This document shows positions 928 to 23,960 of a DNA stretch of 30,389 bases, piece after piece; the stretch's first letter is position 1; every line of letters starts with the position of its first letter. Below the pieces are notes generated by a model. The model ran no database searches. It saw only the letters and a list, made by a program, of their open reading frames with translations, and was not told where the DNA came from. Source of the stretch: Paramicrosporidium saccamoebae KSL3 (lineage: Eukaryota; Fungi; Cryptomycota); contig MTSL01000124.1 of NCBI GenBank assembly GCA_002794465.1, positions 1-30,389 of the forward strand, in the 5' to 3' direction. The translations under genes were made by a program, and so were the position numbers.

Positions 928-1542
928 CCTACTAGGTGATTGGTCCACTGGTCTCTGCTATGAGTTTGTCGCGTAATGGGAAAAGTCACTACGCCTGAGG
1001 ATGTATTGTGCTTCTAAACCACAAATTAAGGCATCATGTCGAAAGAATGGTCTCCCCCAATCGCAACAGAATCAGGTGAGATGGTTTGCGTTGGAGGGAT
1101 AATGTCCCCTAGTTGCAACCGAATCAGATGAAACAGCTTCTGTACATAGGCAGTACTCTACAAGAAGTAATAGCCAGGATTGACCATCTGCTTTCAGAGT
1201 CATAGACTTTTTGGTTAACCGCGTATAAGTAGCACGTGTTGTCCAATCTTAAAAGTCTTGTTCATAGCGGTAGTACTGTTGTATAGTGGACTGATTGCCA
1301 TGTTCTTGATGATAACCATATAGTTTGAAGATGATATTTATTTTTGAAGCAACCAAATGGAGATGATAAGATTTTTACCATTGTATAATTGTTACTATGC
1401 CGTCGGATTAGTAGTGGACGAATTTTCTTCTCGTCTCTTTCCCGCCTGGCTTAGTCTGTGGCTTCTTTACAATCCATGTACAAAACTCGCTTATCGAGTA
1501 CGAGCTCACGTCAATTATCATTCATGGGTCTTGACTCTTCAC

Positions 1543-2275
1543 CTAATCTCTGCCGCAATTTGGGGCCCGAGTATAAGCGACTTGGTGACCACGTCTCATC
1601 CAGTCTATAAGTGGGGGGTCAATATCAGATTTAGTGGCTGGACGCATCGGCACATGGAGTAGCCGTGCCATTGTCGTGTTTGGGGCATATGTTCGTGTGT
1701 ATGGTCGATTGTCTTTTTGGCTTAGGGAGGGAGGGAAAATTCCCTTTGTCTTGCCCAACTCAGGCTCTAATAGCAAAGCGTCGCTCCTATTAGGATTAGC
1801 GAGTGAATCCGCACGTGGCTGGGGCGTGCAATTGGGACGAGGTATGGCTTGGGAAAGCACCATGGACTTTTCCATCAGAGTATTGGAGGATTCTCCTTGT
1901 AGAGTGTCAAGTCCAGTTGGAGGTGATGAACGGACAGATGGCAACAGCTCTGTTAAGGGCGAAAATGTCATTTGAGGCGTTCCAATTACCTGTCCAGTTA
2001 ATTTACCTGGAGGATTGTTGCTTTCATAACCTACAACCTCAACATTCGACTGTAGATCTTGGCTGATGGAGATGGTAGTCACGATACAAAGTGATTTGTC
2101 GGTTTCAGGGTTATATATTATACTGGCGATTACATTGAGCGCGCTTGATGCGGATGGTTGAAGATCGCCCGATTCCAATTGCGTTATTTTGTCAAGTGGT
2201 CCGATGATGGCAATATCGCCGCTTTTTACGTCCACTACTTTGACAGTATCATTGGATGAGCCCAAGGAGATTCAT
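1543..2275 (-). pseudogene. Array member G: deletion-fusion pseudogene (start codon joined out of frame to the C-terminal third of the repeat domain plus tail)
   Basis: ATGAATCTCCTT at 2275-2264 is identical to the first 12 nt of member F but reads MNLLGLIQ*. The shifted frame (ORF 1543-2265, TTG start) encodes SSNDTVKVVDVKSGDIAIIGPLDKI...KSLCIVTTIS and a tail similar to those of members C and F. Confidence 0.8.
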
Positions 2276-2566
2276 TAACGAATCCTGACAAAATGGGGAG
2301 AGGAAATTGTGCAATTTAGGCTGATTCAATAATTTGCTGACGTGATAGCCAACGATCCGGTCAACGTACTGGGTGCAATTACTAAATCTTTGCTGGCTCG
2401 ATTTTAGAGACATAATGGCTTGGTTGTTGTAGGTGAGCCGCCCGGACTAGTCTAATAGCACCTTAATTATTGACTATTAATCGAGCACGTCTAAAGATTT
2501 TGGAAAGCAATGCCGTTTACTATCAAATGTAATTTGACATGCGGTGGTTATTATTTTACTTGTGGG

Positions 2567-5500
2567 TTAGGGAACATGCCTGTATGTGTGGTCCATTGCT
2601 CCTTTGACTTGGGAGGAAAGGGAAGTGTCCTCTTTGTTCTCCAGCTCGAGTTCTGATAGCAGATCCAAGCGTAACTGGGACGTAGAGTAGTGACGAGGTA
2701 GGTTCTTGGAAGGTCTCATGGGCTTTTCCATCAGAGTGTTGGGGGAGTCTCTTAGCTGAAAGACGTTTAAAGCAGGCGGAAGTGACATGAATTCACCGTT
2801 ACTCTGGGGTATTCCAATTAATTTGTCGATCGATTCCCCAGCCGTACTGCTGCTTATATGGTCTCCCGTTTGAATAGTCGGCTGTGAGCTTTGCATAACA
2901 GAAATGATGGCAACAATACACAGCGATTTGTTGAATAAGGAGCCATAGATCATCTCGGCAATCTTATCGGGCGTGTTTGTTGTCTTTAATCGAAGAGTTC
3001 CCGATGCTAATTGCGATATTCGGTTGAGCGGCCCAATGATGGCAAGATCACCATCCTGTACATTTGGCGTTTGTATAGTCGCCTCAAACGAACGAGCAAT
3101 AAACTTGAACACATCTCCGTCAGGGCGGAGAAGGATCGCTCCTAATGGGGGCCTGCCATAGGATGCCAACAACAGCCGATTATTGGTAAGGAGGGTCACA
3201 ATGAGACCATCCGACCCCAGCACATACTTTTTACAAAACTCTTCAATACCCATAGTGGCTTCACTAAGAGCATTTGTCCCCCATGTAAAGATACTCTCTC
3301 GCGTGGGACTATTGGCGTGGTAGCCATTCGAAACTAGGATTCTGTCCTGAGTTACTTGATACCCCATGGCAGCGTTACTGCCGGTCATGTGAAATGGATA
3401 CTTTTCAAGTTTCACCGCTCCCTTGTAGTAACGGTGAGAAAAGACAGTCGGTGACTGTGTGTCCTGAATACTGCTCTGGGAACCATTGCAGTGAATGCTG
3501 CTTTCAAGAAACCAGAAGGCACTTTCCGCAGACTTTGACAGTGGTGCTACACTCGATGGGCTAGGAGGTTGATGAGTGATCAGCCCAGAAGAGTTGGATA
3601 TTTCCTGATGAGTAGTGTATATGCCTGTGAGCACCTTGCTTTCCTCCTGACTGTCGGCCTGGAAGGGACGAACGTTTGTGAGAAATGGAATACTTGATGT
3701 GTGATCGCACTGGAGATTTTTTGGATTGAAAGTAACAAGTGGTTCATCACTCGTACTTTTAACTGTTACACCATGTGCGATTGAAGAATGATTGGGAATC
3801 CTTTTTGATTGTGGAGTGGGAGCAGCTGAAATGGTGGCAACAACGCAAAATGATTTGTTGTCAGCGGTGCCATAGATTTCTTCGGCGATTACATTGAGCG
3901 CGCTTGATGCGGATAGCTGAAGATCTCCCGATTCCAACTGCGATATTTTGTCAAGTGGTCCAATGATGGCAACATCACCATTTTTCACATTCACTACTTT
4001 GACAGCACCTTCAGATGAACGGGCGATGAATTTGAGCAGTTTTCCTTCGGGGCGGAAAAGAGCTGCCCCCAATGGGGGTCTACCATATGAGGCAATCAGT
4101 AATTGATTATCATCTCTTAGTGCCACAGCGAGACCATCAGATTCCTGTGGACATTCCCCTTTACATAATTTTTCAATTTCCAGAGTTGTTCTTCCAAGAT
4201 ACTTTGCTTGCCACTTTTTGAATGACATAGTCATGGAATTCGATTTCCCATAGCCGCCCAGTAATAATATTCTGTTACTAGTTACTCGGTAGCCCATGGA
4301 GCCGTTTCTGCCGTATATTTGAGAGGAAGATGCATCAAAACCCACCACACCGTAGTAGTAGCGTTTATCAAAGACGGCCGATGACTGTGAATTTCGAGTA
4401 CTTTCTTGAAAGCGTGTATAGTGCTTATGTAGGTGGCGAAACCAGATGGCACGTTCCGCTGGCTCTGTAGGTGATTTTGTACTCGATGGGGCGGGCGATT
4501 GACGGGGAACTGGTCCAGAAGATTTTGCCATTTCTTGATGAGCAGTGTCGGCACGTAGATGATGCTTGCTTTTCTCTTGACCATCGGCTTGGGAGGAGGA
4601 TTGCAGTCGTTCAAAAAACAAGTCATTTGGCAAAAGGTCGGTCTGGGCATTTTCTGATACTGACCCAGAAGGTGATGGGCCAATTGTGTCTTTTAACTTT
4701 TTGCCACGTGACCTTGGAGAGGAACGGGGCTTGGCTTTGGTCTTCTTTGACTGTGGAATCTGTTTAGTTGAAATGGTGGCAACAATACAAAATGATTTGT
4801 TGGCTTCAGGGCTATATATTGTACTGGCAATTTCCCCAAGGGTGCTTGACGCGGATAATTGAAGATTGCCTGATTTCAACTGCGGTATTACCTCAAGTGG
4901 TCCGATTATGGCAATGTCGCCATCCTGTACATCTATCGCTTTGACAGTACCATCGGAAGAACAATCAATAAACTTTAACCATTCTCTGTCAGGCCGAAGG
5001 AGGACTACTCCCAATGGAGGTTTACCATATAATGCTACCAGCAACTGATCATCACTTCCTAATGCCACAGCGAGACCATTGGACTCTAACGGATAATTTT
5101 CGCAAAATTCCTCCATGTTCAGTATAACTTTACTAAGATCGGGCTCCATCCAGTTTCTGCCACACTTCCGCCTATTGGGATTTTTAGCTCTGTAGCCATC
5201 CAACAATAAAATTCTGTCTTGAGCTATCCGGTAACCCATGACGCTATTTCTACCATCAATGCTAATGCGACGTTCCAGAGGTTTTACTGCTCCCTGATAG
5301 TAGCGATGAGAAAAAACAGCCGATGACTGTTTATCTCGAATACTGGCTTGAGAAAAAGCATAAGGATCACATGCGCTGCTAAACCAGATGGCACGTTCCG
5401 CTGAATTTGTAGGTGGTGTTTCGTTTGATAGTCTAGGCAACTGAAGGGAAACTGTTCCAGAAGATTTTTCCTTCTCTCTATGAGTGGCTTCTGTGCTTGG

Positions 5501-6775
5501 GCGTTTGTTTTTTTCTTGACTCTCAGTTTGGGAGGAGGACTGCAGTCGTCCAAAAAACAAATCATTCGATACAGAGTCGGGCTGGGGAGTCTCTGATTGT
5601 GGGCTGGTAGGCGGTAGATTAACCGCCCTTTCCGCTGTTCTACCATTTGGGACTGGGAAACAATGGAGCTTGGCATTGGTCTCTTTTGGCTGTAGAGTTT
5701 GATTCTTCAAAATGGTGGCGACAATACAGAATGATTTGACGGTTTCAAGATTATAAATTGTACAAGCAATTACATTGAGCGCGCTCGAGGCGGATAGTTG
5801 AAGAGCTCCCGATTCCAACTTTGATATTATGCCGAGTGGTCCAATGATGACAACATCGTCATCCTGTACATTTACTGCTTCAACGGTATCGTCAGATGAA
5901 TGTGTAATCAGTTGTAATATATCCCCCTTAGGGCGGAGGAGGATTGCTCCCAGTGGAGGCACACCATACGATGCAATCAGCAACTGATTGTTAGCATTAA
6001 GAGCCACAACGAGACCATCGTGCATCAGTGGATACTCCATTCCACGAAATTTGTCCATCTCCAAAGTGACTTTACTCAGAGTGTTCGTTGCCCATGTACT
6101 GAAGAGATTCTCTCCCATGGGATTGGTTACACTGTAGCCATCCAGCACGATAATTCTGTCCTGAGTCATTCGATATCCCATGGCGGTGTTGCTGCCGAGC
6201 ATTTGTGAGTAGTATTTCTCGGGCTTTATCACTCCCAGGTAGTGATACTGAGAAAGCATAGTTGATGACTTTGTCTCCCATGTACTGATCTGAGAGTCGG
6301 CAAAAAGCTCGCCATCGTCAGGAAACCAGATGGCCCGTTCCGCTGGCTTTGCAAATGTTGCCTTACTCAACGAGTCGAGCGGCTGATACGGAGCAAATTT
6401 AATGGACAGCGGGTCTGTTATTGTAGGTTCAGCGGATAGAACTGCCCGTGGCTCATTTCCCTCTTGCCATTGCTTTGGAAGGGAGAGACTCGTTTCGTCC
6501 ATGAGCGGTGCAAAACAGTCAGCGGGAGGCTGCTGCTCACAGGCTGGACGTGCGTTATCCTGAAAAGTTGGGTAATTAGACACTGACACATCATGTTCGT
6601 TGACAGCTTCAAGGCAAGAAAATTCGTCTTCAACATATGCATCGTTTATGAGTATACCTTCATAGGGCACGAGGTCATTTAACCAACCGTCCTGCGTTAA
6701 AGTATATTCTGACCAACCGTCTGGCAGTGTAGACTTGATGCTCTTTGCAAACACAAGGAACCAAAGGAGATTCAT
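2567..6775 (-). CDS. Array member F: putative secreted protein with 4 copies of the ~200-aa repeat domain, 1402 aa
   Basis: Uninterrupted ORF 2567-6871. The family leader MNLLWFLVFAKSIKS starts at ATG 6775 (codon 33 of the ORF). Four domains begin at the WF motif near 6325, 5385, 4440 and 3512, each running about 610 nt to the C[I/V]VA[T/I]I motif. Confidence 0.88.
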   Translation of the reverse strand: MNLLWFLVFAKSIKSTLPDGWSEYTLTQDGWLNDLVPYEGILINDAYVEDEFSCLEAVNEHDVSVSNYPTFQDNARPACEQQPPADCFAPLMDETSLSLPKQWQEGNEPRAVLSAEPTITDPLSIKFAPYQPLDSLSKATFAKPAERAIWFPDDGELFADSQISTWETKSSTMLSQYHYLGVIKPEKYYSQMLGSNTAMGYRMTQDRIIVLDGYSVTNPMGENLFSTWATNTLSKVTLEMDKFRGMEYPLMHDGLVVALNANNQLLIASYGVPPLGAILLRPKGDILQLITHSSDDTVEAVNVQDDDVVIIGPLGIISKLESGALQLSASSALNVIACTIYNLETVKSFCIVATILKNQTLQPKETNAKLHCFPVPNGRTAERAVNLPPTSPQSETPQPDSVSNDLFFGRLQSSSQTESQEKNKRPSTEATHREKEKSSGTVSLQLPRLSNETPPTNSAERAIWFSSACDPYAFSQASIRDKQSSAVFSHRYYQGAVKPLERRISIDGRNSVMGYRIAQDRILLLDGYRAKNPNRRKCGRNWMEPDLSKVILNMEEFCENYPLESNGLAVALGSDDQLLVALYGKPPLGVVLLRPDREWLKFIDCSSDGTVKAIDVQDGDIAIIGPLEVIPQLKSGNLQLSASSTLGEIASTIYSPEANKSFCIVATISTKQIPQSKKTKAKPRSSPRSRGKKLKDTIGPSPSGSVSENAQTDLLPNDLFFERLQSSSQADGQEKSKHHLRADTAHQEMAKSSGPVPRQSPAPSSTKSPTEPAERAIWFRHLHKHYTRFQESTRNSQSSAVFDKRYYYGVVGFDASSSQIYGRNGSMGYRVTSNRILLLGGYGKSNSMTMSFKKWQAKYLGRTTLEIEKLCKGECPQESDGLAVALRDDNQLLIASYGRPPLGAALFRPEGKLLKFIARSSEGAVKVVNVKNGDVAIIGPLDKISQLESGDLQLSASSALNVIAEEIYGTADNKSFCVVATISAAPTPQSKRIPNHSSIAHGVTVKSTSDEPLVTFNPKNLQCDHTSSIPFLTNVRPFQADSQEESKVLTGIYTTHQEISNSSGLITHQPPSPSSVAPLSKSAESAFWFLESSIHCNGSQSSIQDTQSPTVFSHRYYKGAVKLEKYPFHMTGSNAAMGYQVTQDRILVSNGYHANSPTRESIFTWGTNALSEATMGIEEFCKKYVLGSDGLIVTLLTNNRLLLASYGRPPLGAILLRPDGDVFKFIARSFEATIQTPNVQDGDLAIIGPLNRISQLASGTLRLKTTNTPDKIAEMIYGSLFNKSLCIVAIISVMQSSQPTIQTGDHISSSTAGESIDKLIGIPQSNGEFMSLPPALNVFQLRDSPNTLMEKPMRPSKNLPRHYSTSQLRLDLLSELELENKEDTSLSSQVKGAMDHTYRHVP

Positions 6776-6865
6776 CGGCGTCCTCTGATAGGGTAGAGCG
6801 GAGTAATAAATTCGCACAACTGAAATTAACTCGACCCTGGCAAGATGTTTTGGAACAGTCAATGA
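6776..6865 (-). promoter_or_regulatory. Conserved ~90-bp upstream element of the array genes (one copy per gene)
   Basis: Consensus TTGACNGTTCCAAAGCA(T/C)CTGG..AGGGTC(G/A)AGT.AATT..A.TT...TACTCC...CAG-N9-ATG. Copies lie upstream of ATGs 6775, 7269, 10591, 13115, 15398 and 20371, with a diverged copy at 2275. Function is inferred. Confidence 0.7.
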
Positions 6866-6969
6866 GGGCATTAAGGGTCCATGATTCGATACGATCGCGA
6901 ACCGGCAGATGAGGATTTTAGCGCTTCTAAATCTGCTATAGGCGGGTTTATCCTATGCCCATAATCGCC

Positions 6970-7269
6970 TTAGGATGGCTTGTTTGGAAAGAGCTCTTTC
7001 ACAGACATGAGTGGTGCTGAATAGCCGCCAGAAAGCGGCTTTGATTTCCTGAACGAGAGCTCTGAACCGTGACGAATTGGGGCAGTAGGTACTGGCCTAA
7101 CGTATTTCTCGATTGGGGCAATGGCAAAAACTCTGTCTTCTAAATCCAGATCATTAAACCGCTGGGAATTTTCGGGCCAGCGCTCCTGCGTTAAAGTATA
7201 CTTCACCCAACTGGCTGGCGATGTAGGCTGTACGCTTCTTGCAAGCAGAATGAGCCAAAAAAACCGCAT
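6970..7269 (-). pseudogene. Array member E: leader-only remnant or small secreted protein, 99 aa
   Basis: MRFFWLILLARSVQPTSPASWVKYTLTQERW matches the family leader and follows the family upstream element (7270-7357). The ORF stops before any repeat domain. Confidence 0.65.
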
Positions 7270-7777
7270 CGATGATCCCTGGTAGGATGGGTTGGAGTAA
7301 TAAATTTTTACACTTGGAATTGACTCGACCCTTTCCAGGTGCTTTGGACCGGTCAATAACTGTCGTGAATGGCACATTTTTCGGTAATATGAGGTTTGAG
7401 TAAAGGGCCCTGTTAAACAGCATCCACTTGCTATTGGTGAGTCCGATCCAGATAGCGGTCCCGCAGCCCAGTTTGGTTATATTAAGAATGGCCGCCTATA
7501 AAGAAGCCATGTACGTTGATATAAAAAAGCTCAGCCATCAACAGCGCCCTTATTGATATCCCTGGCCCGTAGTTATACTATCTCACAGATAAGATCAGGC
7601 CACTCTTCGATTGAATGAATTAAGCGCTCTAAATGTGCTCGCCACGATCATTGTCGCTGCACGGGCTGGTCATAATAACTTTATTGTTTATAATTTATCG
7701 GGCGTGTTTAGATGTTGTCCTTTAACAATGTTTCCTTACTCAATAATAATACGGTCTAACACTTGACGACTTTTGCT

Positions 7778-10591
7778 CTACTGTTGTTTTGGGAAATTTG
7801 TCTGCAAATACGATTCATGATTCCTTTGGCCGTTGACTTGGGAAGAGCTGTCTTTTGCCCTCTCCAACTCGGGCTCAAAGTCAGAATCCGACTCTGATTC
7901 TGATAACAAAACGGTGGTTTCAATGGGGTTAGCGGGCTGGTTTAAAATTTTTTGGACGCTGGACTGAGTCTGAGTCTGGATCTGGGTCTGAGTCTGGAGG
8001 TTAGAATTGATAAAGGGCATTTCATTAGGAGGCGCCATAGGTGTAATCTTCAGAGAATTCTCCCATCCTCTTGGCTGTTTTGCGGCCAAAGCAGGTGATG
8101 GCAGACGGACAGGTGGTAACGAGTATGCTAAAGGGGGAGGCGCCATCAAGTCACTGCTATTCTGAGAGTTGGCTTGTGGGTAGGCCATCTGGTCCGCTCT
8201 GGTTGCCTGTTCCACTGATCCTCCCGGTACACTACAGCTTGTATGGATCCCAGTTTTAATAGTCGGCTGTGAGTTTCGCTTCGCAGAGATGGTGGCAACA
8301 ATACACATTGATCTGTCGATTTCGGAGTCATAGATTTTATCGACAAGTACATCGAGAGTACTTGATGTCTCCAATGAAACAGTCCCCAGTTCCAACTGCG
8401 ATATTCTGTCGAGTGGTGCCACAATAACAACATCACCATTTTTTACATTCGCCGTTCTAGCAGCACCTTCAGATGAACGGGCGATGAATTTGAGCAGATT
8501 TCCTTTGGGGCGGAAAAGAGCTGCTCCCAATGGGGGTCTACCATATGAGGCAATCAGTAATTGATTATCATCTCTTAGTGCCACAGCGAGACCATCCGGT
8601 TCCTGTGGGAATTTCTCTTTACACAAGTTCTCAATCTCCAAAGTTGTTTTACCAAGATACTTTGCTTCCCACTCTTTGATTGACCCACTTGTGCGATTCG
8701 CCCTACCGTGGCCACCCAACAATAGTATTCTGTCATGAATTACTCGGTAACCCATAGAGGCATTTCGACCAGCTATTTGGGTGAGATTTCTATCGACGCC
8801 CACTGCACCGTGGTAGTAGCATTTATCAAAAAAGGCCGATGGCTGTGCACTTTGAGTAGTGTAGGTATAACTGTGGTGTTCACGCACCCGGAGAAACCAG
8901 TTGGCAAGCCCCGCTGAATTTCTAAGTGGTGTTCCACTTGGTGTGGCAGACAATTGGCGGGGAACTGGTTCCGAGGGCTTTTGCATATCTTGATAAACAG
9001 TCTCTGCACGTGTCTGTGGCTGGTCATCCTCTTCACCATCGGCTTCGGAGGAAGAGCGTAATCGCTCGAAAAATGAATCACTTGATACGACGCCATGATA
9101 GGAAGTACTTGGTAGCGGACCTGCGGGCAATGGATCACTTGCACTTTCCGTTTCCGTACCATGTGGAGCTGAAACATACTGAGGACTGACATTGGTATCC
9201 CTTGAGGGTGGAGTAGGACTATTCGAAATGGCAGCAACAGTACAGAGGGATTGGTTGCTGGCAAGGTCATAGATCTCGTTGCCAGTTGCATCTGAGGCTG
9301 GGTGTTTGTTACGTTCGTTCTCCTCTTGGCCATCAGGCTGGAAGGAAGAACCAAAATTGTCAAAGAGCGGAATCATTAGCTCAATCTCAGGTTGAGCCTT
9401 TTCTGATTCTAGACTGGAAGATGGTGGATTATCCGCACTTTCAACTACTTCATCCCGTGGAATTGGGAGGAAATGGGCCTTGGTTCTGGTTCCTTCTAAT
9501 TGTATGATTTGATTGTTCGAAATTGCAGCAACAATACAAATTGATTTCCCACTTGCAAAGCCGTAGAGTCTACTAGCAATTTCTTCAGAGGTGCTTGATA
9601 CGGATAGTTGAAGATTTCCCGATTTTAACTGTGATATCATGTTGAGTGGTCCCACAGCAACAATGTCACCTTCCTGCACAACTGCTGCTTCGACGGTATC
9701 GTCAGATGAATGTGTAATTAATTGTAATAAATCTCCATTAGGGCGGAGGAGAATTGCTCCCAGTGGAGGTCTACCATATGATGCCATCAGCAACTGATTG
9801 TTGGCATTAAGAGCCACAACAAGCCCATCGTGCATCAGTGGATACTCCATTCCACGAAATTTGTCCATCTCCAAAGTGACTTTACTCAGAGTGTTCGTTG
9901 CCCATGTACTGAAGAGATTCTCTCCCATGGGATTGGTTACACTGTAGCCATCCAGCACGATAATTCTGTCCTGAGTCATTCGGCATCCCATGGCGGCGTT
10001 GCTGCCGAGCATTTGTGAGTAGTATTTCTCGGGCTTTATCACTCCCAGATAGTGATACTGAGAAAGCATAGTTGATGACTTTGTCTCCCATGTACTAATC
10101 TGAGAGTCGGTAAAAAGCTCGCCATCGTCAGGAAACCAGCTGGCACGTTCCGTCGGCTTTGCAACTGTTGCTCCACTCGATGAGTTGGGTGGCTTATACG
10201 GGACAAATACGATGGACAGCGGATCTGTTATTGTAGGTTCAGTGGTTAGAACTGCCTGTGGTTCATTTCCCTCTTGCCATTGTCCTGGAACAGAGCGATT
10301 ATTTTCATCAACGAACAGTGCTGAGTGGTAAGCAGGGGACGGCCGCTGTTCACAGGCTGGAAGTGTGTCTTTCTCAAAAGTTGAATAGTTAGACACTGGC
10401 CCTTTGCGTTCTTTAATAGCTTCTAGGTAGGTAAATCCGTCTTGTTCTACACTTGCATCGCTCACAAATGCACCTCCATATGACGCGAGGTCTTTGGGCC
10501 AACTGCCTTCCTCTAAAGCATGTTCCACCCAGTTCTCTGGCTGTGTGGACTGGATGCTCCCTGCAAACACGAGGAGCCAAAAGAAATTCAT
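7778..10591 (-). CDS. Array member D: putative secreted protein with 2 repeat domains, 937 aa
   Basis: Leader MNFFWLLVFAGSIQS; domains start near 10135 and 8895; S/P/Q-rich tail including QTQTQIQTQTQS. Confidence 0.9.
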   Translation of the reverse strand: MNFFWLLVFAGSIQSTQPENWVEHALEEGSWPKDLASYGGAFVSDASVEQDGFTYLEAIKERKGPVSNYSTFEKDTLPACEQRPSPAYHSALFVDENNRSVPGQWQEGNEPQAVLTTEPTITDPLSIVFVPYKPPNSSSGATVAKPTERASWFPDDGELFTDSQISTWETKSSTMLSQYHYLGVIKPEKYYSQMLGSNAAMGCRMTQDRIIVLDGYSVTNPMGENLFSTWATNTLSKVTLEMDKFRGMEYPLMHDGLVVALNANNQLLMASYGRPPLGAILLRPNGDLLQLITHSSDDTVEAAVVQEGDIVAVGPLNMISQLKSGNLQLSVSSTSEEIASRLYGFASGKSICIVAAISNNQIIQLEGTRTKAHFLPIPRDEVVESADNPPSSSLESEKAQPEIELMIPLFDNFGSSFQPDGQEENERNKHPASDATGNEIYDLASNQSLCTVAAISNSPTPPSRDTNVSPQYVSAPHGTETESASDPLPAGPLPSTSYHGVVSSDSFFERLRSSSEADGEEDDQPQTRAETVYQDMQKPSEPVPRQLSATPSGTPLRNSAGLANWFLRVREHHSYTYTTQSAQPSAFFDKCYYHGAVGVDRNLTQIAGRNASMGYRVIHDRILLLGGHGRANRTSGSIKEWEAKYLGKTTLEIENLCKEKFPQEPDGLAVALRDDNQLLIASYGRPPLGAALFRPKGNLLKFIARSSEGAARTANVKNGDVVIVAPLDRISQLELGTVSLETSSTLDVLVDKIYDSEIDRSMCIVATISAKRNSQPTIKTGIHTSCSVPGGSVEQATRADQMAYPQANSQNSSDLMAPPPLAYSLPPVRLPSPALAAKQPRGWENSLKITPMAPPNEMPFINSNLQTQTQIQTQTQSSVQKILNQPANPIETTVLLSESESDSDFEPELERAKDSSSQVNGQRNHESYLQTNFPKQQ

Positions 10592-10853
10592 CGGCGACCC
10601 CTGAAAGAGCGGGGGGGGGGTAACAGATTTGCCTAATTGAAATTAACTTGACCCTGGCCAGGTGCTTCGGAGCAGTCAATAATTGTCTTTAGTGGTGCAT
10701 TTTCGATAAGATCGGGCTACTCTTTGATTGAATGAATTAAGCGCTCTAAATGCACTCATTAATATTGGAGACAATCTCTGCTGCCATCTTTAGGACAAGT
10801 GTCGTAAATAAGCTTCTTGGTTTCTCAGGTCGTTGACTTGGGAAGAGGAAAAA

Positions 10854-13115: not shown

Positions 13116-13583
13116 CGGCCTGCCTTGGTAGAATGAGCCGGAGTAGTAAATTGTCCAATTGAAATTGACCCAACCCTAGCCAGATGCTTTGGAACGGTCA
13201 GTAAATGAATCCAATGGCGCATTTTTCGACAAGATTGGACTACTTTTTATTGGGTAGCCGATAACGTCATAAATAACCACCCGGCTCAAGTCATAGTGCT
13301 TTTATTATCTATTGGTTGGAGGGTAAGACTGTCTTTTACAAAATGCAACTTGATACTCGGTATTGAAATCTGCTGCCGTATTCAGGACAAGTGTCGTGAA
13401 TATAATCTACGGTTTATTTGGCCATTGGATTGAGAAGAAGAAAAACTCTACTGGTTCTCCGATTCGGACTCAGAGTCGGATCTAGTAGGTGGGGTGGCAA
13501 TTGGTGTGTCAAAAATGCAAGTGGCACTAATTCGCTGTTATTTTGGGAATCGATCTGTGGACGGGCCATTTGGGGTGGTTCCA

Positions 13584-15398
13584 TTAATATTTCAGCTGGC
13601 CCCCAGCCTCAATAGTCGACAGCGGAGCTCGTCTAACGGAAATGGTGGCGACGATACAGAGCGATTTGTTGGCTGAAGAATCAAAAATTTCTCTGGCAAG
13701 TTTATTTGGTGGGCTGGATGCGGAAAGTTGAAGATTTTCCGATTCCAACTGCGATATTCTGTCGAGTGGCCCTACGATAGCAATATCACCATTTTGCGCG
13801 TTCACTTCTTTGACAGTATCATCAGATGAACCGCCAATAAACCTCAATCGCCCCCCGTTAGGGCGGAGAAGGACTGCTCTCAATGGGGGCCTGCCATATG
13901 ATGCCATCAATAATTGATTGTTATTCCGTAACGCCACAACGAGACCATCAGATACCAGTGAATGCCCCTCTCCAAAGAAATTCCCAAACTGCAGAGTATT
14001 TTCATTAAGATCATCCGTTGCCCATGTGCCAAAGAGACTCTCTCCCGCAGGGTTATTCGCACTATAGCCATCGAACAATAATATCCTGTCATGGGTTACT
14101 CGGTATCCCATAGAGCCGTTTCTGCCGAACATGTAGAAGAGAAGGCTCTCGGGTTTCACTATTCCGTGGTAGGAGCACTGAGAAAAAACAGTTGATGATT
14201 GTGCATTCATAATGTTGGTTCGGAAGTCAATAAAAGGCTTTCCATTTTCGAGAAACCAGCTAGCACGTTCCGCTGAATTTATAGGGGAGGGAACACTTGC
14301 ATTTTCAACCGTCTCACCACAGGGGACTGAATAGGAATTGAGTATGACGGCGGCCTCTTTTGATTGTGGAATATGATTCGTTGAAATGGTGGCGACAATA
14401 CACATTGATCTGTCGGCTCCAGGACTATAAATTGCATTGGCAATTACATCGAGTGCGCTTGATGCGGGTAGTTGAAGAGCTCCCGATTTCAACTGCGATA
14501 GTCTATCAAGCGGTGCCACAACAACGGTATCGCCGTGCTGTACATTCAGCATTTGGACAGTACTGTCAGACGATTGCGCGATAAACTTTAACATATCGCT
14601 ATCCAAGCGGAGGAGAGCTACTCCCAGTGGGGGCCTGCCATAGGATGCTATCAGTAATTGATTATTATCCCTTAGTGCCACAGCGAGACCATCAGATCCC
14701 GGTGAACATTTCTTTTTACATAATTTTTCAATCTTCAAAGTTGTCTTGCCAAGATACTTTGTTTCCCACCCTTTCAATGACCCATTCGTGCAATTCTTTC
14801 TACCGTAGCCACCTAGCAATATTATTTTGTCACGAGTTATTCGGTAACCCATGGAGACGTTTCGCCCAAACATTTGGATAGGGGATTCCACGAGATGCAC
14901 CATACCGTAGTAGTAGCGTTTATCAAAGAAAATCGATAACTTTGCATGTCGAGCACTGGTTTGAAGGGAACTGTAATGCGTGATCGCCCTGAGAAACCAG
15001 GCGGCGCGGCTCGCTGACTCTACTAGTGCTGTCTCACTCGATGATTCAGGCAGTTGAGGCGGGGCAGATGTGGCGGATAGCGGGTCTGTCGTCCCAGTTT
15101 CTGTGGGTAGAGCTGTCCGTGGCTCAGCCTCCTGTTGCCACTGCCTTGGAAGGGTGGGATCATTGAGGAACGACTCTTGTCTCCATAATAAAAGTCCGTC
15201 TTTCATAAAGGCTGAGTCATTAGACTTTGGCTCGCCATGTGCTTTGGCAACTTTAAGGAAAGAAACTACATCCTCAGTATCTTCATAAGGCATGAAATTC
15301 TCTAACCAACTGTCCTGCGCTAAAGCATGTTCTGCCCAACTATCTGGTGTTGTGGACTGGATGCTCCCTGCAAACACAATGGCCCAAAGGAAATTCAT
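13584..15398 (-). CDS. Array member B: putative secreted protein with 2 repeat domains, 604 aa, tail cut short by a frameshift
   Basis: Leader MNFLWAIVFAGSIQS; domains start near 14995 and 14255. Sequence homologous to the paralogue tails continues in other frames past the stop, to about 13448. Confidence 0.88.
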   Translation of the reverse strand: MNFLWAIVFAGSIQSTTPDSWAEHALAQDSWLENFMPYEDTEDVVSFLKVAKAHGEPKSNDSAFMKDGLLLWRQESFLNDPTLPRQWQQEAEPRTALPTETGTTDPLSATSAPPQLPESSSETALVESASRAAWFLRAITHYSSLQTSARHAKLSIFFDKRYYYGMVHLVESPIQMFGRNVSMGYRITRDKIILLGGYGRKNCTNGSLKGWETKYLGKTTLKIEKLCKKKCSPGSDGLAVALRDNNQLLIASYGRPPLGVALLRLDSDMLKFIAQSSDSTVQMLNVQHGDTVVVAPLDRLSQLKSGALQLPASSALDVIANAIYSPGADRSMCIVATISTNHIPQSKEAAVILNSYSVPCGETVENASVPSPINSAERASWFLENGKPFIDFRTNIMNAQSSTVFSQCSYHGIVKPESLLFYMFGRNGSMGYRVTHDRILLFDGYSANNPAGESLFGTWATDDLNENTLQFGNFFGEGHSLVSDGLVVALRNNNQLLMASYGRPPLRAVLLRPNGGRLRFIGGSSDDTVKEVNAQNGDIAIVGPLDRISQLESENLQLSASSPPNKLAREIFDSSANKSLCIVATISVRRAPLSTIEAGGQLKY

Positions 15399-15797
15399 CG
15401 ATGACCCGTGGCGGGTTGGAGCGGAGTAATAAGATTTTGCAATTTAAATTGGCCCGACCCTACCCAGATGCTTTGGAACGATTAGTAGATTTATTTAATA
15501 ATAGTACCACTAAGCCTGGCATGTCCAGTTATAATTGAGAGGTTATAAAGACCCTTTATTGGTATCTCTGGCCCGTAGTTATACCATCTCACAACAATCA
15601 TGACATATCAAAGGCATCTAGAGAGTTCAGGAGGCCAAGGCTGTCGCCCCAGTGAACTTGCGTGTTGAGGAAGCCCCTTTATTAATGATCGGGTCTAGTA
15701 AAAAATTAAAAGTCGACCTACGGACGAATCATTTGGGGCACTCCGATTGTCTATCCCGTTTATCTATCAAGTGTTTTCGGTTGTAAAGATCTCAGGT

Positions 15798-16429
15798 TCA
15801 ATTTTCAGCCGCAAGCTTTGATGACAAAATTTTGGCAGCAATACAGATTGATTTGTCGTTTTTAGGGTCATAGATTTTTTTGGAAATTCGTTCAGGCGCG
15901 CTTGGTGCAGATAGTTGAAGATTTCCCGATTCCAACTGCAATATTTTGTCAAGTGGTCCGATTATGGCAATATCACCATCTCGTGCCTTCACCGCTTTGA
16001 TCAACTGAACGGGAAATAAACTTCAGCCACTAGATATTAATGGAAACTCTTTCTTACAGAATTCTTCAATCTCTAATGCGGCTTCACTCAGTGCATGCTG
16101 TAGTTGCGATTCTTGGAACTATTCGCGCCGTACCCATGCAACAGTAGGATTCTATCCTGAGTTACCCGGTAACCCATGGGGCGGTAGTTGCTGCCCAACA
16201 TGTGAAAGGGATACTTCCGGGGCTTTACCACCTCTTGGTAAGAGCGACGAGAATAATGATTGCATTTGCTCTAAAACCAGCAGCCATGCTCCGCTGACTT
16301 TGTCCCGTTTGGCGAGGCGGGAGACTGACGGGGAACTGGTCCAGAGGCTTTCGATTTGGCCTTCTTTCGACGGGCAGTATTTGTGCGTCTGCGCGACTGT
16401 TTCTTTTTACCGGCTTGAGAGGATGCATG
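15798..16429 (-). pseudogene. Decayed fifth repeat domain of array member A
   Basis: Linker and domain homology continues past the TGA at 16430 (...KSAEHGCWF*SKCNHY...MGYRVTQDRILLLHGY...ALSEAALEIEEFCKK...DGDIAIIGPLDKILQLESG...KSICIAAKI). It has stops at 16271, 16088 and 16023, a frameshift near 16090, and internal deletions including the whole LVVAL...YG.PPLG segment. Confidence 0.85.
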
Positions 16430-17233
16430 TCAGCTTTCAGAAGACGAAGCACTTGATGCGAGATAGGTCTGATAATTCTCTGAATCTGAACCAGGGAATG
16501 ATGGGCCAATTGCAATTTTTAACTTTTTCCCACGTGAGCCTGGCTGGGGGCTGGGCTTGGCTTTGGCCTTTTTGGAGCGGGGAATCTGATTAGTCGAAAT
16601 GGTAGCGACAATACAGATTGATTTGCCCGTTTCAGGGCTATGGATTACTCTGGAAATCTCATCGGGCGCGCTTGATGTGGGTAGCTTAAGCTCTCCCGAT
16701 CCCAATTTTAATATTTTTTTGAGCGGTCCCACAATGACGACGTCGCCATCCTGTACATCCACCGCTTTGACAGTATTGGCAGACGACTGTGCGATTATTT
16801 TCAACGAAAATCTTTCAGGACGGAGAAGAACCGCCCCCAATGGAGGCTGACCGTATGATGCTATCAGCAATTGATTATAAGCGCCAAGAGCCACAATGAG
16901 GCCATCGGATATCAGTGGAATGGTTCTTCTACAGAGCCTTTCGATCTTCAAAGTATCTTCATTGAGAGCATTTGTTGCCCATGTGTCAAGGAGATTCTCT
17001 CCCGTGGAATCGCTTGAATTGTAGCCATCCAACACTAGAATTCTGTCCTGAGATATTCGGTATCCCATGGCAGAGTTGTTGCCAAACATGTGAAAGTTAT
17101 TTTTGCCAACCTTTACCACTCCCTTGTAGCAACGGCAAGAAAAGACGGTCAATGGCTTACCTTGAATCTGGGTTCTAGTGAGCCTAGAAAGCTTGCCGCT
17201 ATCAGGAAACCAGATGTGCCGTTTTGCTGGCAT
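16430..17233 (-). CDS. Fourth repeat domain of array member A, cut off by an in-frame TAG (267-aa ORF, no leader)
   Basis: Same frame as ORF 17240-20371 and only 6 nt after its TAG. It encodes one complete domain (WFPDSG...ILVLDGY...YGQPPLGAVLLRP...KSICIVATIS). Whether it is expressed is unknown. Confidence 0.55.
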   Translation of the reverse strand: MPAKRHIWFPDSGKLSRLTRTQIQGKPLTVFSCRCYKGVVKVGKNNFHMFGNNSAMGYRISQDRILVLDGYNSSDSTGENLLDTWATNALNEDTLKIERLCRRTIPLISDGLIVALGAYNQLLIASYGQPPLGAVLLRPERFSLKIIAQSSANTVKAVDVQDGDVVIVGPLKKILKLGSGELKLPTSSAPDEISRVIHSPETGKSICIVATISTNQIPRSKKAKAKPSPQPGSRGKKLKIAIGPSFPGSDSENYQTYLASSASSSES

Positions 17234-17239
17234 TTCTGG

Positions 17240-20200
17240 CTATTTCTTGTTCGATGGGCTGGGAGGCCGATGGGTGGCTAGTCCAGAGGCTTTTGCTGCT
17301 TTTCGAAGAGTGTATGCACGTGTGCGTGGCCTACTTTGATCTTGACCGCTCGCTTGAGAGGAGGCCCTTAGACCTTCAAAAGATGAATCATTTGACACGA
17401 GGACGGGCTGGACATTTTTTTGTTGCGGACTAATGGGCGATGGATTACCCACCCTTTCTACTGTTTTACCATTTGGGGCCGGAGAGTGACGAGGACTGTC
17501 ATTGGTCTCTCTTGATTGTGGGGTAGGATTGTTCGAAATGACAGCAACAATGCAAAGTGATTTGCTGAGTGTGGAGCCATAGACTTTCTCGGCAATTTCA
17601 CCAGGCGTGTCTGATGTCTTCAATTGAAGAGTTCCCAACTCTAATTTTGATATACTGTTGAGCGGCCCAATGATGGCAAAGTCACCATTTTGCACATTCT
17701 CCACGTCGACAGTATTATCCGAAGAACGAGCGTTAAACTTTAGTCGCTCTCCATCAGGGCGGAGGAGGATCGCCCCCAATGGAGGCTTACCATAGGATAT
17801 CATCAACAGCTGGTTATTAGCGCGTAGGGCCACAATGAGACCATCTGTTCCCAACGTATACTTTCTGCAAAACTCTTGAATTTCCATAGTGGCTTCACTC
17901 AAAGCATTAGTACCCCATGTGAGAATATTCTCTCTCGCAGGGCTATTAGCACGGTAGCCATCCGACACTAGGATTCTGTCCTGAGCTACTTGGTATCCCA
18001 TGGCAGAGTCACTGCCTGCCATGTGAAATGGATGTTTCTCAAGTCCCACCACTCCCTTGTAGAAACGGTGGCCAAAGACAGTTGATGATGTTGTGTCCTG
18101 AATACTGGTTTGAAAATTTTTGTGGCAACTTCTGCCTTCAAGAAACCAGAGGGCACGCTCAGCTACACTCGGTGGGCTAGAAGGTTGGTGAGTGACTAGC
18201 CTAGAAGAGTTGGACATTTCCTGATGAGGGGTGGCCGCGCTTGTGTACGGATTAGCTCTCTCTCGACTGTTGTCTTGTAAGAAGGGTTGAGAAGTTTCAA
18301 AAGGCGAATCAATCGGCGTGTGATTGGGCAGAGCCCTTGCAGATGGTCTATTACCCGGCAATCGTCTACGGCGACGTTTCATTAGTGTATATTGTGGGAC
18401 TGGAGAGTAATCGGACTTGATGCCGAGCTTTTTTAGATGTAGGCTCTGATTAATCGAAATGGAGGCGATGATACAAAATGATTTGTCGGTTTCGGGGTTG
18501 TGGAGTGCAGTGGCAACTTCATCAAACGTATCTGATAACTTGAATTTAAGAGCCCCCGATTCCAGTTGCAATATCTTGTCACGTGGTCCTACAACGACAA
18601 AGTCACCGTGCTTCACATTCCCTACGTTGATAATGTCGTCGCCAGTGGTACCACTAACAAGCTTAAACGTACGTCCGACAAGGCGGAAAAGAGCCGCAGC
18701 CAATGGGGGCTTGCCATACGATGCCATCACCAACTGATTATTAGGACGAAGAATTACGATGAGACCATCTGACCCCACCACATAATTTTTGCAGAGCTCT
18801 TTCACATCCATAGTGGCTTCCCTCAAAGCATTCGCTCCCCACATAAAGAGACTTTCTCGCGCGGGGCTATTAGCATGGTAGCCATTCGACACTAGGATTC
18901 TGTCCTGAGTTACTTGATATCCCATGATAGTGTTACTGCCTGTCATGTAAAATAAACGTCTATCATTTTCCACCGCTCCCTCGTAGAGGCGGTAGCCAAA
19001 GACAGTTAATGATGTTGTGTCCTGCGTACCTATGTGATGATCTTTGTAGTGATTGCTGCCTTCAAGAAACCAAAGGGCACGTTCAGCTGACTTTGTCGGT
19101 GATGGTACACTCGATGGTCTAAAAGGTTGATGAGTGACTAGTCCAGAAGATTTTTCTAGCTCTCGAACAGTCTCTTTTGCTTGCGGAATTTGCTTGGTTA
19201 GAATGGTGGCGACAATGTAAAGCGATTTGTCGCTTATAACGCCATGAACTGATTTGGCCATTTCCTCAGGGGTGCTTGTTGCGTATAGCTGACAGAATCC
19301 CCGTTTCAATGGCAATATTAAGTCAAGTGGTCCTACAATGACAATGTCACCAGTTTGCACACTTTTCGTCTTGATAGTGTCATCAGAAGAACGAACAATA
19401 AACGTGAGCATCCGTCCATTAGGGCGGAGAAGAGCCGCACCTAGCGGGGGTTTGCCATAAGATACAATCACTAATTGACCTCTTGCATTAAAAGTCACAA
19501 CAAGACCGTCAGATATTAGGGGATAACCGGCTCTACGGAATGGCTCGCTCTTCAGGGCAGCTTCGTTAAGATTATCTGCCGCCCATGCGCTGAATAGACT
19601 CTCTCCTGCAGGATTATTTGCCTTGTAACCATCCAGCAATAGAATCCTGTCGCGGGTGGCTCGATATCCCATAGCGGCGTTGCTGCCGAACATGTAGGAG
19701 AGAAGGTTCCCGGGTTTTATCGCTCCGTAGTAGGAAATTTGAGAAAAAACAGCTGATGACTGTGTACCCATGGTATTTGCTTGAAAGTCAACAAAAGGTT
19801 TACCATCTTCAAGAAACCAGTTGACACGTTCCTCTGGACCTGGAGGCAATGTTCCGCTCGATGAGGCAGGTGGCTGATATGGGACAGATGTGTTGGACGG
19901 TGGGTTTGTCATCCTAGTTGCTGCAGGTGGACACACCCATGGTTCAGCCTCTTGTTGCTGCTGTATCGAAGGAAAGAGATGCCTTTCATCCCTGGGCGGT
20001 TCTACATCAGCGAGCAGTGGCTGTTCCCATGGTGAAAGCGTGTCCTTTTGCAAAGTTGAATGGTTAGGCACTGGTTCTTTACGCTCCCTGGCGCCTTCTA
20101 GTTCTTTATGCTCCCTGGCGCCTTCTAGTTCTTTATGCTCCCTGACGCCTTCTGGTTCTTTACGCTCCCTGGTGCCTTCTGGTTCTTTACGCTCCCTGAC

Positions 20201-20371
20201 GCCTTCAAGGAAGGAAAACTCACCTTCAGCATATGCTTCATCTGCAAATATATCTTCATATGGCTCGAGGCCTTTTGACCAATTGTCCTGCGCAAAAAAA
20301 TCGTCTAGAAAACTTTCTGGTAGCGCAGACTGGATGCTCCCTGCAAATACGAGGAACCAAAGGAAAATCAT
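17240..20371 (-). CDS. Array member A: putative secreted protein with 3 repeat domains and a 9-aa tandem repeat, 1043 aa
   Basis: Leader MIFLWFLVFAGSIQS; domains start near 19815, 19070 and 18145; KRRRRR in the second linker. Confidence 0.88.
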   Translation of the reverse strand: MIFLWFLVFAGSIQSALPESFLDDFFAQDNWSKGLEPYEDIFADEAYAEGEFSFLEGVRERKEPEGTRERKEPEGVREHKELEGAREHKELEGARERKEPVPNHSTLQKDTLSPWEQPLLADVEPPRDERHLFPSIQQQQEAEPWVCPPAATRMTNPPSNTSVPYQPPASSSGTLPPGPEERVNWFLEDGKPFVDFQANTMGTQSSAVFSQISYYGAIKPGNLLSYMFGSNAAMGYRATRDRILLLDGYKANNPAGESLFSAWAADNLNEAALKSEPFRRAGYPLISDGLVVTFNARGQLVIVSYGKPPLGAALLRPNGRMLTFIVRSSDDTIKTKSVQTGDIVIVGPLDLILPLKRGFCQLYATSTPEEMAKSVHGVISDKSLYIVATILTKQIPQAKETVRELEKSSGLVTHQPFRPSSVPSPTKSAERALWFLEGSNHYKDHHIGTQDTTSLTVFGYRLYEGAVENDRRLFYMTGSNTIMGYQVTQDRILVSNGYHANSPARESLFMWGANALREATMDVKELCKNYVVGSDGLIVILRPNNQLVMASYGKPPLAAALFRLVGRTFKLVSGTTGDDIINVGNVKHGDFVVVGPRDKILQLESGALKFKLSDTFDEVATALHNPETDKSFCIIASISINQSLHLKKLGIKSDYSPVPQYTLMKRRRRRLPGNRPSARALPNHTPIDSPFETSQPFLQDNSRERANPYTSAATPHQEMSNSSRLVTHQPSSPPSVAERALWFLEGRSCHKNFQTSIQDTTSSTVFGHRFYKGVVGLEKHPFHMAGSDSAMGYQVAQDRILVSDGYRANSPARENILTWGTNALSEATMEIQEFCRKYTLGTDGLIVALRANNQLLMISYGKPPLGAILLRPDGERLKFNARSSDNTVDVENVQNGDFAIIGPLNSISKLELGTLQLKTSDTPGEIAEKVYGSTLSKSLCIVAVISNNPTPQSRETNDSPRHSPAPNGKTVERVGNPSPISPQQKNVQPVLVSNDSSFEGLRASSQASGQDQSRPRTRAYTLRKAAKASGLATHRPPSPSNKK
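20073..20207 (-). repeat. 5 x 27-bp coding minisatellite (EG[V/T/A]RE[R/H]KE[P/L])
   Basis: Plus-strand units (g/a)gttcttta(c/t)gctccctg(g/a)(c/t)gccttct start at 20073, 20100, 20127, 20154 and 20181, with no spacers. Confidence 0.97.
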
Positions 20372-20869
20372 TGATGGCCCCTGGTTGAATATTGGGATAC
20401 TAGCATTATAATTTGAGTTGACTCGACACCAACCAGGTATTTTGAAAAGATCCAGGAATATAGTGTTTGGTTCAGTAATACTGGACTAATTTTTGCTTGG
20501 ATGCGTCGCTACGGACTTTGTAAGACGGCTAGAGGGCTCTTATCGTGACTTTGTGAGCCCTCTTATAGGTTCAATACTAGCGTGGCAGTATTTATATAGA
20601 GTTAGCGACAATATTCCCACTACACGCCTTTATCTTTCTCTTTAATAACGGGTTAATTCTGAGTATTTAACCTGCTGATCTGCCCATTACATTACAGGAT
20701 GGATTTAATACTTTATAAATAGTCACCAAATTGACCTTGTTGCTGCAGACGGGTTGCTCAATTTTGAGTCGTAGTACACTACTAATTATCTATGCTGTTG
20801 CCAGCTTTAGTAAAAACCCTGGCGGCCCCTTATGTGCTAACGTTTACAATTTGAATAATCTTTCTTCAC

Positions 20870-21463
20870 ATGGTCTACTTTGACCTGCATGACATTTTGT
20901 GTGAGGAACAGCCGGTGAAGCTTCTGTTTACACAGGACGTGCCGTGGACCGGTCAGTTGGCCCTCTCAGACGACACTGTCTCCACCGACACTCTCATCCC
21001 GCGCGGCACTGTCCTCCAAATGCCGCTTTGGCTCGCGCGCTCCCTCCACACCACAGGCCTCGCCAACATTCTCGCCCCCCGACAATTCTCCACCCGCATG
21101 CGTGCTGACCTGGCTGCCGATGCGACGGCAGTGAATCTGCGGGATCTGGCCACCTATTGGTATCGACTGGGCGCCAAGATGGCGGGGATTCTACCAGCCG
21201 AGAACATTCCGAGAGTGATGGCAGCGGCATTGGCAGGTCGGTTAATCTTCCTAGGAAGGGCAATTTTCGCTCCCTCTGAGGGCTCTAAAGATCCCCACCA
21301 AACTATTTTTGGCGGTGCAAACAGCGGTCTGGCCACGCTGGATCACACTGAACAAGCAATATATACGGCAACCATTGCCGCTAGAAAGGACACTGATGGT
21401 TGGGCAAGTCGGTCCAATACCCTTTTAAAACCACTTGATCTATATAATGAGCTAAAGTACTAA
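20870..21463 (+). CDS. PSF3: GINS complex subunit Psf3
   Basis: MVYFDLHDILCEE...IPRGTVLQMPLWLA...L.ADA..VNLR...Y.Y matches the Psf3 N-terminal YxDxxDIL and LPLWLA motifs; 197 aa is the typical size. Confidence 0.88.
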   Translation: MVYFDLHDILCEEQPVKLLFTQDVPWTGQLALSDDTVSTDTLIPRGTVLQMPLWLARSLHTTGLANILAPRQFSTRMRADLAADATAVNLRDLATYWYRLGAKMAGILPAENIPRVMAAALAGRLIFLGRAIFAPSEGSKDPHQTIFGGANSGLATLDHTEQAIYTATIAARKDTDGWASRSNTLLKPLDLYNELKY

Positions 21464-23909: not shown

Positions 23910-23918
23910 TGGAGCTGC

Positions 23919-23930: not shown

Positions 23931-23960
23931 GAGTCGGGAATTGCCGCCAGCCACTGGCAG

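Follow-up and report, generated by a model that had tools for sequence, protein, structure and literature searches.

A tandem array of putatively secreted, multi-domain proteins with a predicted PP2C-like fold in Paramicrosporidium saccamoebae

Paramicrosporidium saccamoebae is an intranuclear parasite of Saccamoeba and belongs to the Rozellomycota/microsporidian lineage. We analysed the 30,389-bp contig MTSL01000124.1 of its genome, here called the window, from which the public gene model PSACC_01737 comes, and examined a tandem array of genes at positions 1543-20371 whose products are built from copies of one domain of ~220 residues. The array is best read as encoding a new protein family with a remote, predicted PP2C-like fold and an unusual, putatively secreted tandem architecture, of a class familiar from the expanded secreted families of intracellular parasites. 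With moderate confidence we propose that it is a birth-and-death tandem array of one paralogous family, encoding secreted, multivalent, non-catalytic PP2C-fold modules that would act at the parasite-host interface. A first-pass annotation of the same DNA had called it a "system"; the word does not fit, as these are members of one paralogous family and not cooperating components.

Organization of the array

When the window was searched with one domain by tblastn, there were 14 full-length matches, all on the minus strand (E values from 1e-45 to 1e-85), and three partial ones, well outside what chance would give; every long open reading frame (ORF) in the ORF list for 1543-20371 lies on that strand as well. 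The single orientation reported in the first-pass annotation is therefore correct, whereas the 16 copies of ~200 residues that it counted became 14 intact copies of ~220 residues together with partial ones. The region comprises five intron-free long ORFs (A, B, C, D, and F), an in-frame continuation (E), and three decayed pieces, and the GC content is even across the window, at 44-50%. As had been stated, the proteins differ in domain number, with two in B, C, and D, three in F, and four in A; E adds one. All of the array features given below are on the minus strand.

Gene F (17240-20371) encodes a leader (MIFLWFLVFAGSIQS), an N-terminal region, and three domains (19181-19846, 18437-19099, and 17516-18175), and terminates at a TAG (17240-17242) within an inter-domain linker. 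Its N-terminal region contains a 27-nucleotide coding tandem repeat of 4.9 copies (20074-20206, 92% matches), found in this gene only, which specifies nine-residue repeats of the form EG.RE[RH]KE[PL]. After the TAG the frame of F is resumed in E (16430-17239), which holds a fourth intact domain (16577-17239) and has neither a leader nor an upstream element of its own; the TAG could be a nonsense mutation, a site of readthrough, or an assembly error. Downstream of E lies a degraded fifth domain (15813-16303) in two pieces (16109-16303 and 15813-16001), the N-terminal part being in frame -2 with stops and the C-terminal part in frame -1; its conserved NQLL..YG.PPLG..LRP core has been deleted. 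Gene D (13584-15398) encodes a leader and two domains (14364-15026 and 13620-14285), and gene C (10854-13115) a leader, two domains (12018-12680 and 11148-11810), and an acidic C-terminal tail. Gene B (7778-10591) likewise has a leader and two domains (9500-10165 and 8267-8926), and it retains a 24-residue remnant of a deleted middle domain at 9206-9277. A truncated 5' remnant (6970-7269) consists of an upstream element, a leader (MRFFWLILLARSVQP), and 84 further residues in a 99-residue ORF without a domain. Gene A (2567-6775) encodes a leader, four domains (5690-6355, 4751-5413, 3809-4471, and 2882-3541), and a C-terminal tail; its start is the conserved leader ATG at 6775, the ORF being merely open upstream to 6871. 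The last piece, G (1543-2265), is a 3' remnant with the final third of a domain (2068-2259) and a tail resembling those of A and C, and lacks a leader and an N-terminal part.

The leader, preceded by an upstream element, occurs in six copies, with ATGs at 20371, 15398, 13115, 10591, 7269, and 6775. The earlier claim of a 15-residue hydrophobic leader in six units thus held, the ATG at 7269 leading the 99-residue ORF of the 5' remnant, whereas the claim of seven units with an upstream element did not, since only six were found and E is the frame of F beyond the TAG rather than an independent unit. The elements are located at 20372-20500 (F, the most divergent copy), 15399-15525 (D), 13116-13245 (C), 10592-10720 (B, with the core TTGAC.G.TCC.AAGCA.CTGG..AGGGT...GT.AATTTCAATT), 7270-7395 (5' remnant), and 6776-6900 (A). 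Mean identity among the six copies was 71% at -90 to -41, 60% at -40 to -1, and 77% in the leader codons. Because synonymous sites in the domains are only ~46% identical (proportion of synonymous differences, pS, 0.54), the upstream element looks constrained within the array; in its simplest reading, this stretch of ~90-130 nucleotides is probably a shared promoter/5' untranslated region (UTR). When the element was sought at a related gene on metagenome contig L001, which encodes a leader and two domains, it was recognizable solely in the ~15 nucleotides before the ATG, and the support for its constraint therefore applies within the array.

Selection on the domains and evolution of the array

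An alignment of the 14 intact domains spans 223 columns and needs no large gaps; 22 residues are invariant, and the mean column identity is 62%. Pairwise identities range from 38 to 82%. By the method of Nei and Gojobori, the 91 domain pairs gave a median ratio of nonsynonymous to synonymous substitution (dN/dS) of 0.44, with 0.49 for the N-terminal half and 0.36 for the C-terminal half, values that are approximate because dS is near saturation. The domains are under purifying selection.

Five domain types can be distinguished: alpha (A1, B1, F1, and D2), beta (A3, B2, and D1), gamma (A4, F3, and F2), delta (C1 and E1), and epsilon (A2 and C2). Their order varies between genes, being alpha-epsilon-beta-gamma in A, alpha-(remnant)-beta in B, delta-epsilon in C, beta-alpha in D, and alpha-gamma-gamma-TAG-delta-(degraded) in F/E. 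The sole recent pair is A1/B1, with 82% identity and a dS of 0.29; the remaining domains are 38-65% identical, with a pS of ~0.54, from which we conclude that the array is old, and that duplication, internal deletion, and shuffling of domains have reshaped it. Signs of decay are also present in the 5' and 3' remnants, the degraded domain, and the TAG in a linker. The array is thus a product of birth-and-death evolution and not of a recent burst, and some of its units are decaying. The "rapid turnover" proposed earlier is borne out as to turnover, by the remnants, the degraded domain, the in-frame stop, and the shuffled order, but not as to "rapid", as the domains are mostly old and under purifying selection. 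A transposon or other selfish repeat was considered and rejected: the array contains no transposase or reverse transcriptase domain, and its units are under purifying selection.

Public gene models of the array

The public MAKER models of the array loci (PSACC_01737 and its neighbours; P0002, P0005, P0006, P0009, and P0013) splice out the C-terminal halves of the domains, and also join the truncated 5' remnant at 7269 to gene A. If the models were right, these halves would be introns. Against this, the ORFs are open over 604-1402 codons, and the removed halves have the dN/dS of 0.36 given above and carry the motifs that are conserved best (NQLL.ASYG.PPLGA.LLRP, GD..I.GPL, and C-I-V-A-T-I-S). 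Moreover, metagenome relatives encode the domain contiguously, C-terminal half included, and the modelled "introns" are ~200-410 nucleotides long, as compared with 35 nucleotides for the intron checked in the neighbouring ING gene. The open frames and the selection on the halves also uphold the first-pass view that the long ORFs are free of introns. The models stem from a MAKER run with keep_preds=1, in which unsupported ab initio predictions were retained (PMC5701793). We conclude that the public models of the array loci are wrong, domain halves having been taken as introns and adjoining genes fused, and because of this, proteome-based analyses have missed a proper view of the family. An exact look-up of protein D gave no record, its public model being different.

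Distribution of the family

When 1.84 billion representative proteins were searched exhaustively with a profile, 55 matches were obtained at E<=1e-3, 24 of them at E<=1e-30; at least three of the 55 look spurious, and P0037, P0046, and P0053 were discounted as unrelated repeat proteins matched over short stretches. Word-indexed searches with A1 and A3 found three proteins each. Twenty of the exhaustive-search matches were looked up: all 12 that were named came from P. saccamoebae, and the other eight were JGI/Logan metagenome proteins. This search beyond the window, which brought up P. saccamoebae and metagenome proteins and no widespread housekeeping family, agrees with the lineage-specific expansion that had been suggested. 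The named members are PSACC_00012, PSACC_00013, and PSACC_00014 (on one 73.7-kb contig), PSACC_00209, PSACC_00220/_00704, PSACC_01196, PSACC_02211, PSACC_02259, PSACC_02369, PSACC_02500, PSACC_03170, and PSACC_03333, and the PSACC_ members are spread over more than 10 contigs.

Pfam had no meaningful match to the whole proteins or to 33 domains taken singly; the whole-protein scan returned a weak SidD_cat match (E 0.25) over the NQLL..YG.PPLG region of protein A. A sequence profile search of the PDB gave only short, spurious Kelch-repeat matches to "RI..LDGY". Degenerate-pattern scans found no relative in prokaryote genomes and no confirmed locus in a collection of metagenome contigs, and a literature search found no description of the family or of any P. 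saccamoebae secretome. As judged by these searches, the family is lineage-restricted, previously undescribed, and without a named sequence family.

Other loci resemble the array. The model PSACC_02259 (P0008; 2569 residues, on a 181-kb contig) contains several internal copies of a leader like those of the array (MI.FWAL.VGLC.CS) and at least nine N-terminal domain halves, and evidently represents another tandem array, from a more divergent subfamily, with several leader-bearing genes merged in one model. Metagenome contig L002 (JGI 3300036987, 37 kb) has, in the region 1-17200, a co-oriented row of seven or more ORFs, each of which contains one or two domains; these domains are ~20% identical to those of the window, and several of the ORFs have hydrophobic N-terminal leaders. 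As the leader, the domain, and the tandem arrangement recur in other P. saccamoebae loci and in L002, they are traits of the family and not accidents of one locus. A narrow taxonomic range, many paralogues, clustering, and pseudogene remnants, by which lineage-specific expanded secreted families are recognized, were all found.

Three further observations were made at these loci. The row of ORFs on L002 adjoins a histone deacetylase gene. On L003, a metagenome contig of a close relative, a DDE_Tnp_4 transposase-like gene (2126-2491) lies ~1.2 kb from family member P0001. The model PSACC_01196 (P0032) has a leader and one family domain followed by ~540 unrelated residues labelled HECT-domain-containing by UniRef, and may be a fused gene model or a genuine domain fusion.

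The leader as a probable signal peptide

In the six window units the leader has the 15-residue hydrophobic consensus M-N-F-F-W-L-L-V-F-A-G-S-I-Q-S, followed by T (MNFFWLLVFAGSIQS). It consists of an eight-residue hydrophobic core with a mean Kyte-Doolittle value of 2.6-3.0 and a small polar c-region, G/S-I-Q-S, and on inspection has the composition of an endoplasmic reticulum (ER) signal peptide, namely an h-region and a c-region with a small residue at -1 and a tolerated residue at -3. No other transmembrane-like segments were found, all 19-residue windows being at or below 1.6 except for one beta-strand stretch in A, and no hydrophobic C-terminus of the transmembrane or glycosylphosphatidylinositol (GPI)-like kind was found in the array proteins. 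Similar leaders are present in divergent relatives from the genome and from metagenomes (P0004, P0011, P0021, P0024, P0027, P0039, P0045, and P0055). The hydrophobic leader noticed at first thus has the make-up of a eukaryotic signal peptide and is kept in divergent relatives. It fits a cleaved ER signal peptide, with cleavage likely after SIQS, and the products are probably soluble and secreted.

Predicted fold and catalytic residues

Structure prediction by AlphaFold2 (AF2) from the 14 window paralogues only gave a model with a predicted local distance difference test (pLDDT) score of 55 and an unmodelled N-terminal half; from a 33-sequence alignment that included distant relatives, the model reached a pLDDT of 88 and a predicted template-modelling (TM) score (pTM) of 0.88. 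Comparison of the latter model with the PDB by Foldseek placed PP2C/PPM-fold structures at all of ranks 1-23, with probabilities of 0.84-1.0, query-normalised TM scores of 0.32-0.44, and a best E of 3.7e-4; unrelated folds appeared only below these, with probabilities of at most 0.06. The top matches were tPphA, PstP, RsbX, PppA, PPM1K, Lem3, PBCP, streptococcal Stp1, RssB (rank 20), and SpoIIE. The shallow first model likewise matched PP2C/PPM-fold structures almost exclusively. The domain is therefore predicted to be a very divergent PP2C-type alpha-beta-beta-alpha sandwich, and the first-pass statement that no named family could be recognized stands by sequence, with no Pfam match, and not by predicted fold.

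The PPM/PP2C phosphatases (tPphA, 2J86; PstP, 1TXO; RsbX, 3W40; SpoIIE, 3T91) are similar to the domain in size (~220 residues) and predicted fold. In the model, as in bacterial PP2Cs as generally known, a beta block at the N-terminus is followed by a pair of short helices, then six strands, two more helices, and a closing strand. We also see possible echoes of PP2C motifs: an "LDG" follows a strand, a "G" precedes the two central strands, and a "GD" comes ahead of the penultimate strand; "LLRPDG..L..I..S.D.T" is a further such echo. Unlike PP2Cs, the family domain has no detectable sequence or profile similarity to them, lacks most of the metal-centre Asp residues, and has a short flap region; none of the 33 domains matched the PP2C Pfam families PF00481, PF13672, and PF07228 at E<=10.

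Only two acidic columns are conserved in the 33-sequence family alignment, D72 (in "LDG", 82%) and D166 (in "GD", 100%), as compared with nine invariant Asp residues in a reference alignment of 16 active PP2Cs, and 5 of the 14 window copies carry G or N in place of D72. Among these nine Asp residues are D38, D191, and D229 of PstP, as well as D25 and D118, which are known metal ligands; G39 also belongs to the invariant set. The canonical PP2C metal-centre Asp/Gly set is absent from the family. By the order of elements, "LDG" would correspond to PP2C "ADGMGG" and "GD" to the structural "GD" of PP2C; by strand and helix order, the Asp of PP2C "SDGL" appears to be replaced by G-P-L and that of "DN.T" by K/R-S. 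The domain is most likely a binding module (a pseudophosphatase) and not an enzyme.

Genes flanking the array

The array is flanked by ordinary eukaryotic genes, those for an ING/PHD protein (239-927), GINS-PSF3 (20870-21463), and MCM8 (21684-23696), and further genes encode a RhoGAP-SH3 protein, a CBF/Mak21 protein, and a SUN-domain protein. In the ING gene, removal of a 35-nucleotide GT..AG intron (850-884, minus strand) gives a complete ORF that starts with the ATG at 927 and has a conserved N-terminus. Neither the MCM8 nor the RhoGAP ORF has an ATG before its conserved domains; exons further upstream would explain this, but are not proven by it. The earlier statement that three neighbouring genes need splicing is thus confirmed for ING and compatible with the other two. 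Just upstream of the MCM8 ORF there is a candidate 31-nucleotide GT..AG intron (23706-23736, minus strand), and nearby a 165-residue ORF (23762-24259), whose frame differs from that of the sequence abutting the donor of the candidate intron. The C-terminal part of the RhoGAP-SH3 gene contains a 36-nucleotide coding tandem repeat of 3.6 copies at 25549-25677 (SSIPDDSLLPVD repeats). Both contig ends carry short 12-nucleotide tandem repeats, at 1-25 (TTAATGATGTAT, 2.1 copies) and 30333-30387 (AAGTACCATCTA, 4.6 copies), which may account for the assembly break at each end.

Discussion

We propose the following scheme for the array. The functional, intron-free genes would be driven by the shared promoter/5' UTR element of ~90-130 nucleotides, and each protein would consist of the 15-residue signal peptide, an N-terminal region of ~120-150 residues, two to four globular domains of ~220 residues joined by Ser/Pro/Thr- and Lys/Arg-rich linkers, and, in some, an acidic C-terminal tail. 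The domains would have a very divergent PP2C/PPM-type fold in which most of the Asp residues of the binuclear metal centre are gone. The proteins would enter the ER by way of the leader and then be released from the wall-less intranuclear stage. At the parasite-host interface they would be soluble and bind, in multivalent fashion, to (phospho)proteins of the host or of the parasite surface; multivalent binding is suggested by the presence of tandem modules on flexible linkers. New variants would arise by gene duplication, domain shuffling, and deletion. The vegetative parasite resides within the host nucleus (PMC5701793), so that proteins secreted there would come into direct contact with nuclear components of the host. 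A bolder version would see in these proteins the first effector family of a rozellid or early microsporidian-lineage parasite: secreted, multivalent PP2C-fold pseudophosphatases, released directly into the amoeba nucleus, that capture phosphorylated nuclear proteins or kinases, diversify by domain shuffling in an arms race, and reuse an old enzyme fold as a tandem binding scaffold. In full, this version seems to us unlikely.

Several points weigh against the proposal of secreted binding modules. The leader is short, and a basic n-region is lacking. The link to PP2C is one of fold only and comes from a predicted structure with TM scores below 0.5. Alignment by hhalign of the family profile with bacterial PP2C profiles, built from PstP and tPphA (sequences confirmed against the PDB) and 14 relatives, gave probabilities below 1% and inconsistent aligned segments, and these alignments were not used for residue mapping. 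The equivalence of metal ligands was derived from the order of motifs and secondary-structure elements and not from superposed coordinates, and the dN/dS values, as said, are approximate. Finally, the window copies show fair conservation at five acidic positions (D66, D72, D112, D/E154, and D166), which could make up an unconventional site.

The array proteins can be compared with several known systems. The E. coli RssB C-terminal domain (3EQ2) and human TAB1 share with the family a PP2C-like fold with an incomplete catalytic set; both are non-catalytic, and PP2C-fold pseudophosphatases serve as binding or adaptor modules. They differ from the family in being single-domain intracellular regulators without sequence homology to it, a secretion signal, or tandem repetition. 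We know of no precedent for PP2C-like domains arranged two to four in tandem behind a signal peptide. Toxoplasma PP2C-hn and PPM3C are parasite PP2C-fold proteins that travel through the secretory pathway to the host interface or nucleus (PMC7793252). In contrast to the array proteins, these are canonical, catalytically competent single-domain proteins that can be recognized by sequence and belong to no large tandem family. The large gene families of Nematocida and the SVSPs of Theileria are known for remnants and rapid diversification. Like the array, they are clustered, taxon-restricted, and expanded, and encode signal peptides (PMC10393165, PMC2657828). The array is unrelated to them in sequence, each of its proteins repeats a large globular PP2C-like domain as the unit, and the host compartment is an amoeba nucleus.

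The proteins might instead be structural components of the parasite's own spore wall, polar filament, or surface coat, to which the signal peptide would direct them, with the domains and their S/P/T-rich linkers forming a polymeric matrix. A signal-peptide-like leader and a repetitive multi-domain build would suit such a role, as would the content of S+T+P, 22-25% of the mature protein, and the several N-x-S/T sequons. Microsporidian polar tube proteins, too, evolve fast, are secreted, and are in part encoded in tandem. Although P. saccamoebae has a polar filament, its predicted proteome yielded no homologues of the polar filament proteins of microsporidia (PMC5701793); that proteome contains only truncated models of the array genes. 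However, a globular, enzyme-like fold on flexible linkers is unlike known polar tube and spore wall proteins, a family so large and highly diversified, on more than 10 contigs, resembles interface families more than stoichiometric components, and the proteins lack a hydrophobic C-terminus for surface anchoring. We regard a structural role as somewhat unlikely.

Rather improbable, in our judgement, is that the proteins are secreted, active but atypical PP2C-fold hydrolases with several active sites each, acting as phosphatases or in other phosphodiester or phosphomonoester chemistry. Bacterial PP2C-fold enzymes are known that remove AMP or phosphocholine, and the best structural matches of the domain belong to active PPM enzymes, among them PP2C-fold hydrolases whose chemistry is not that of a phosphatase. 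The weak SidD_cat match of protein A and the five acidic positions fairly conserved among the window copies could be taken in the same sense, and apicomplexan parasites secrete active PP2Cs (PMC7793252). Against activity, the family keeps two acidic positions where active PP2Cs have nine invariant Asp residues, D72 is lost in several copies, the Asp residues of "SDGL" and "DN.T" appear to be replaced, and there is no sequence-profile similarity to PP2C.

That the array is mostly non-functional, through decay or lack of expression, or that the public models are right, is very improbable: the several remnants, the in-frame TAG, and the frameshifted domain would agree with decay, but the long ORFs are open and the selection data contradict non-functional DNA.

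We know of no account of host manipulation by parasites of the Rozellomycota or the early microsporidian lineage, for which the secreted binding modules proposed here offer a concrete set of candidates. Secreted proteins and effectors go unmentioned in the P. saccamoebae genome paper (PMC5701793). With members on more than 10 contigs in a genome of ~3,750 genes, the family may rank among the largest lineage-specific families of the organism, and it would exemplify a PP2C-like fold that lacks the catalytic set and is carried in tandem behind a secretion signal.

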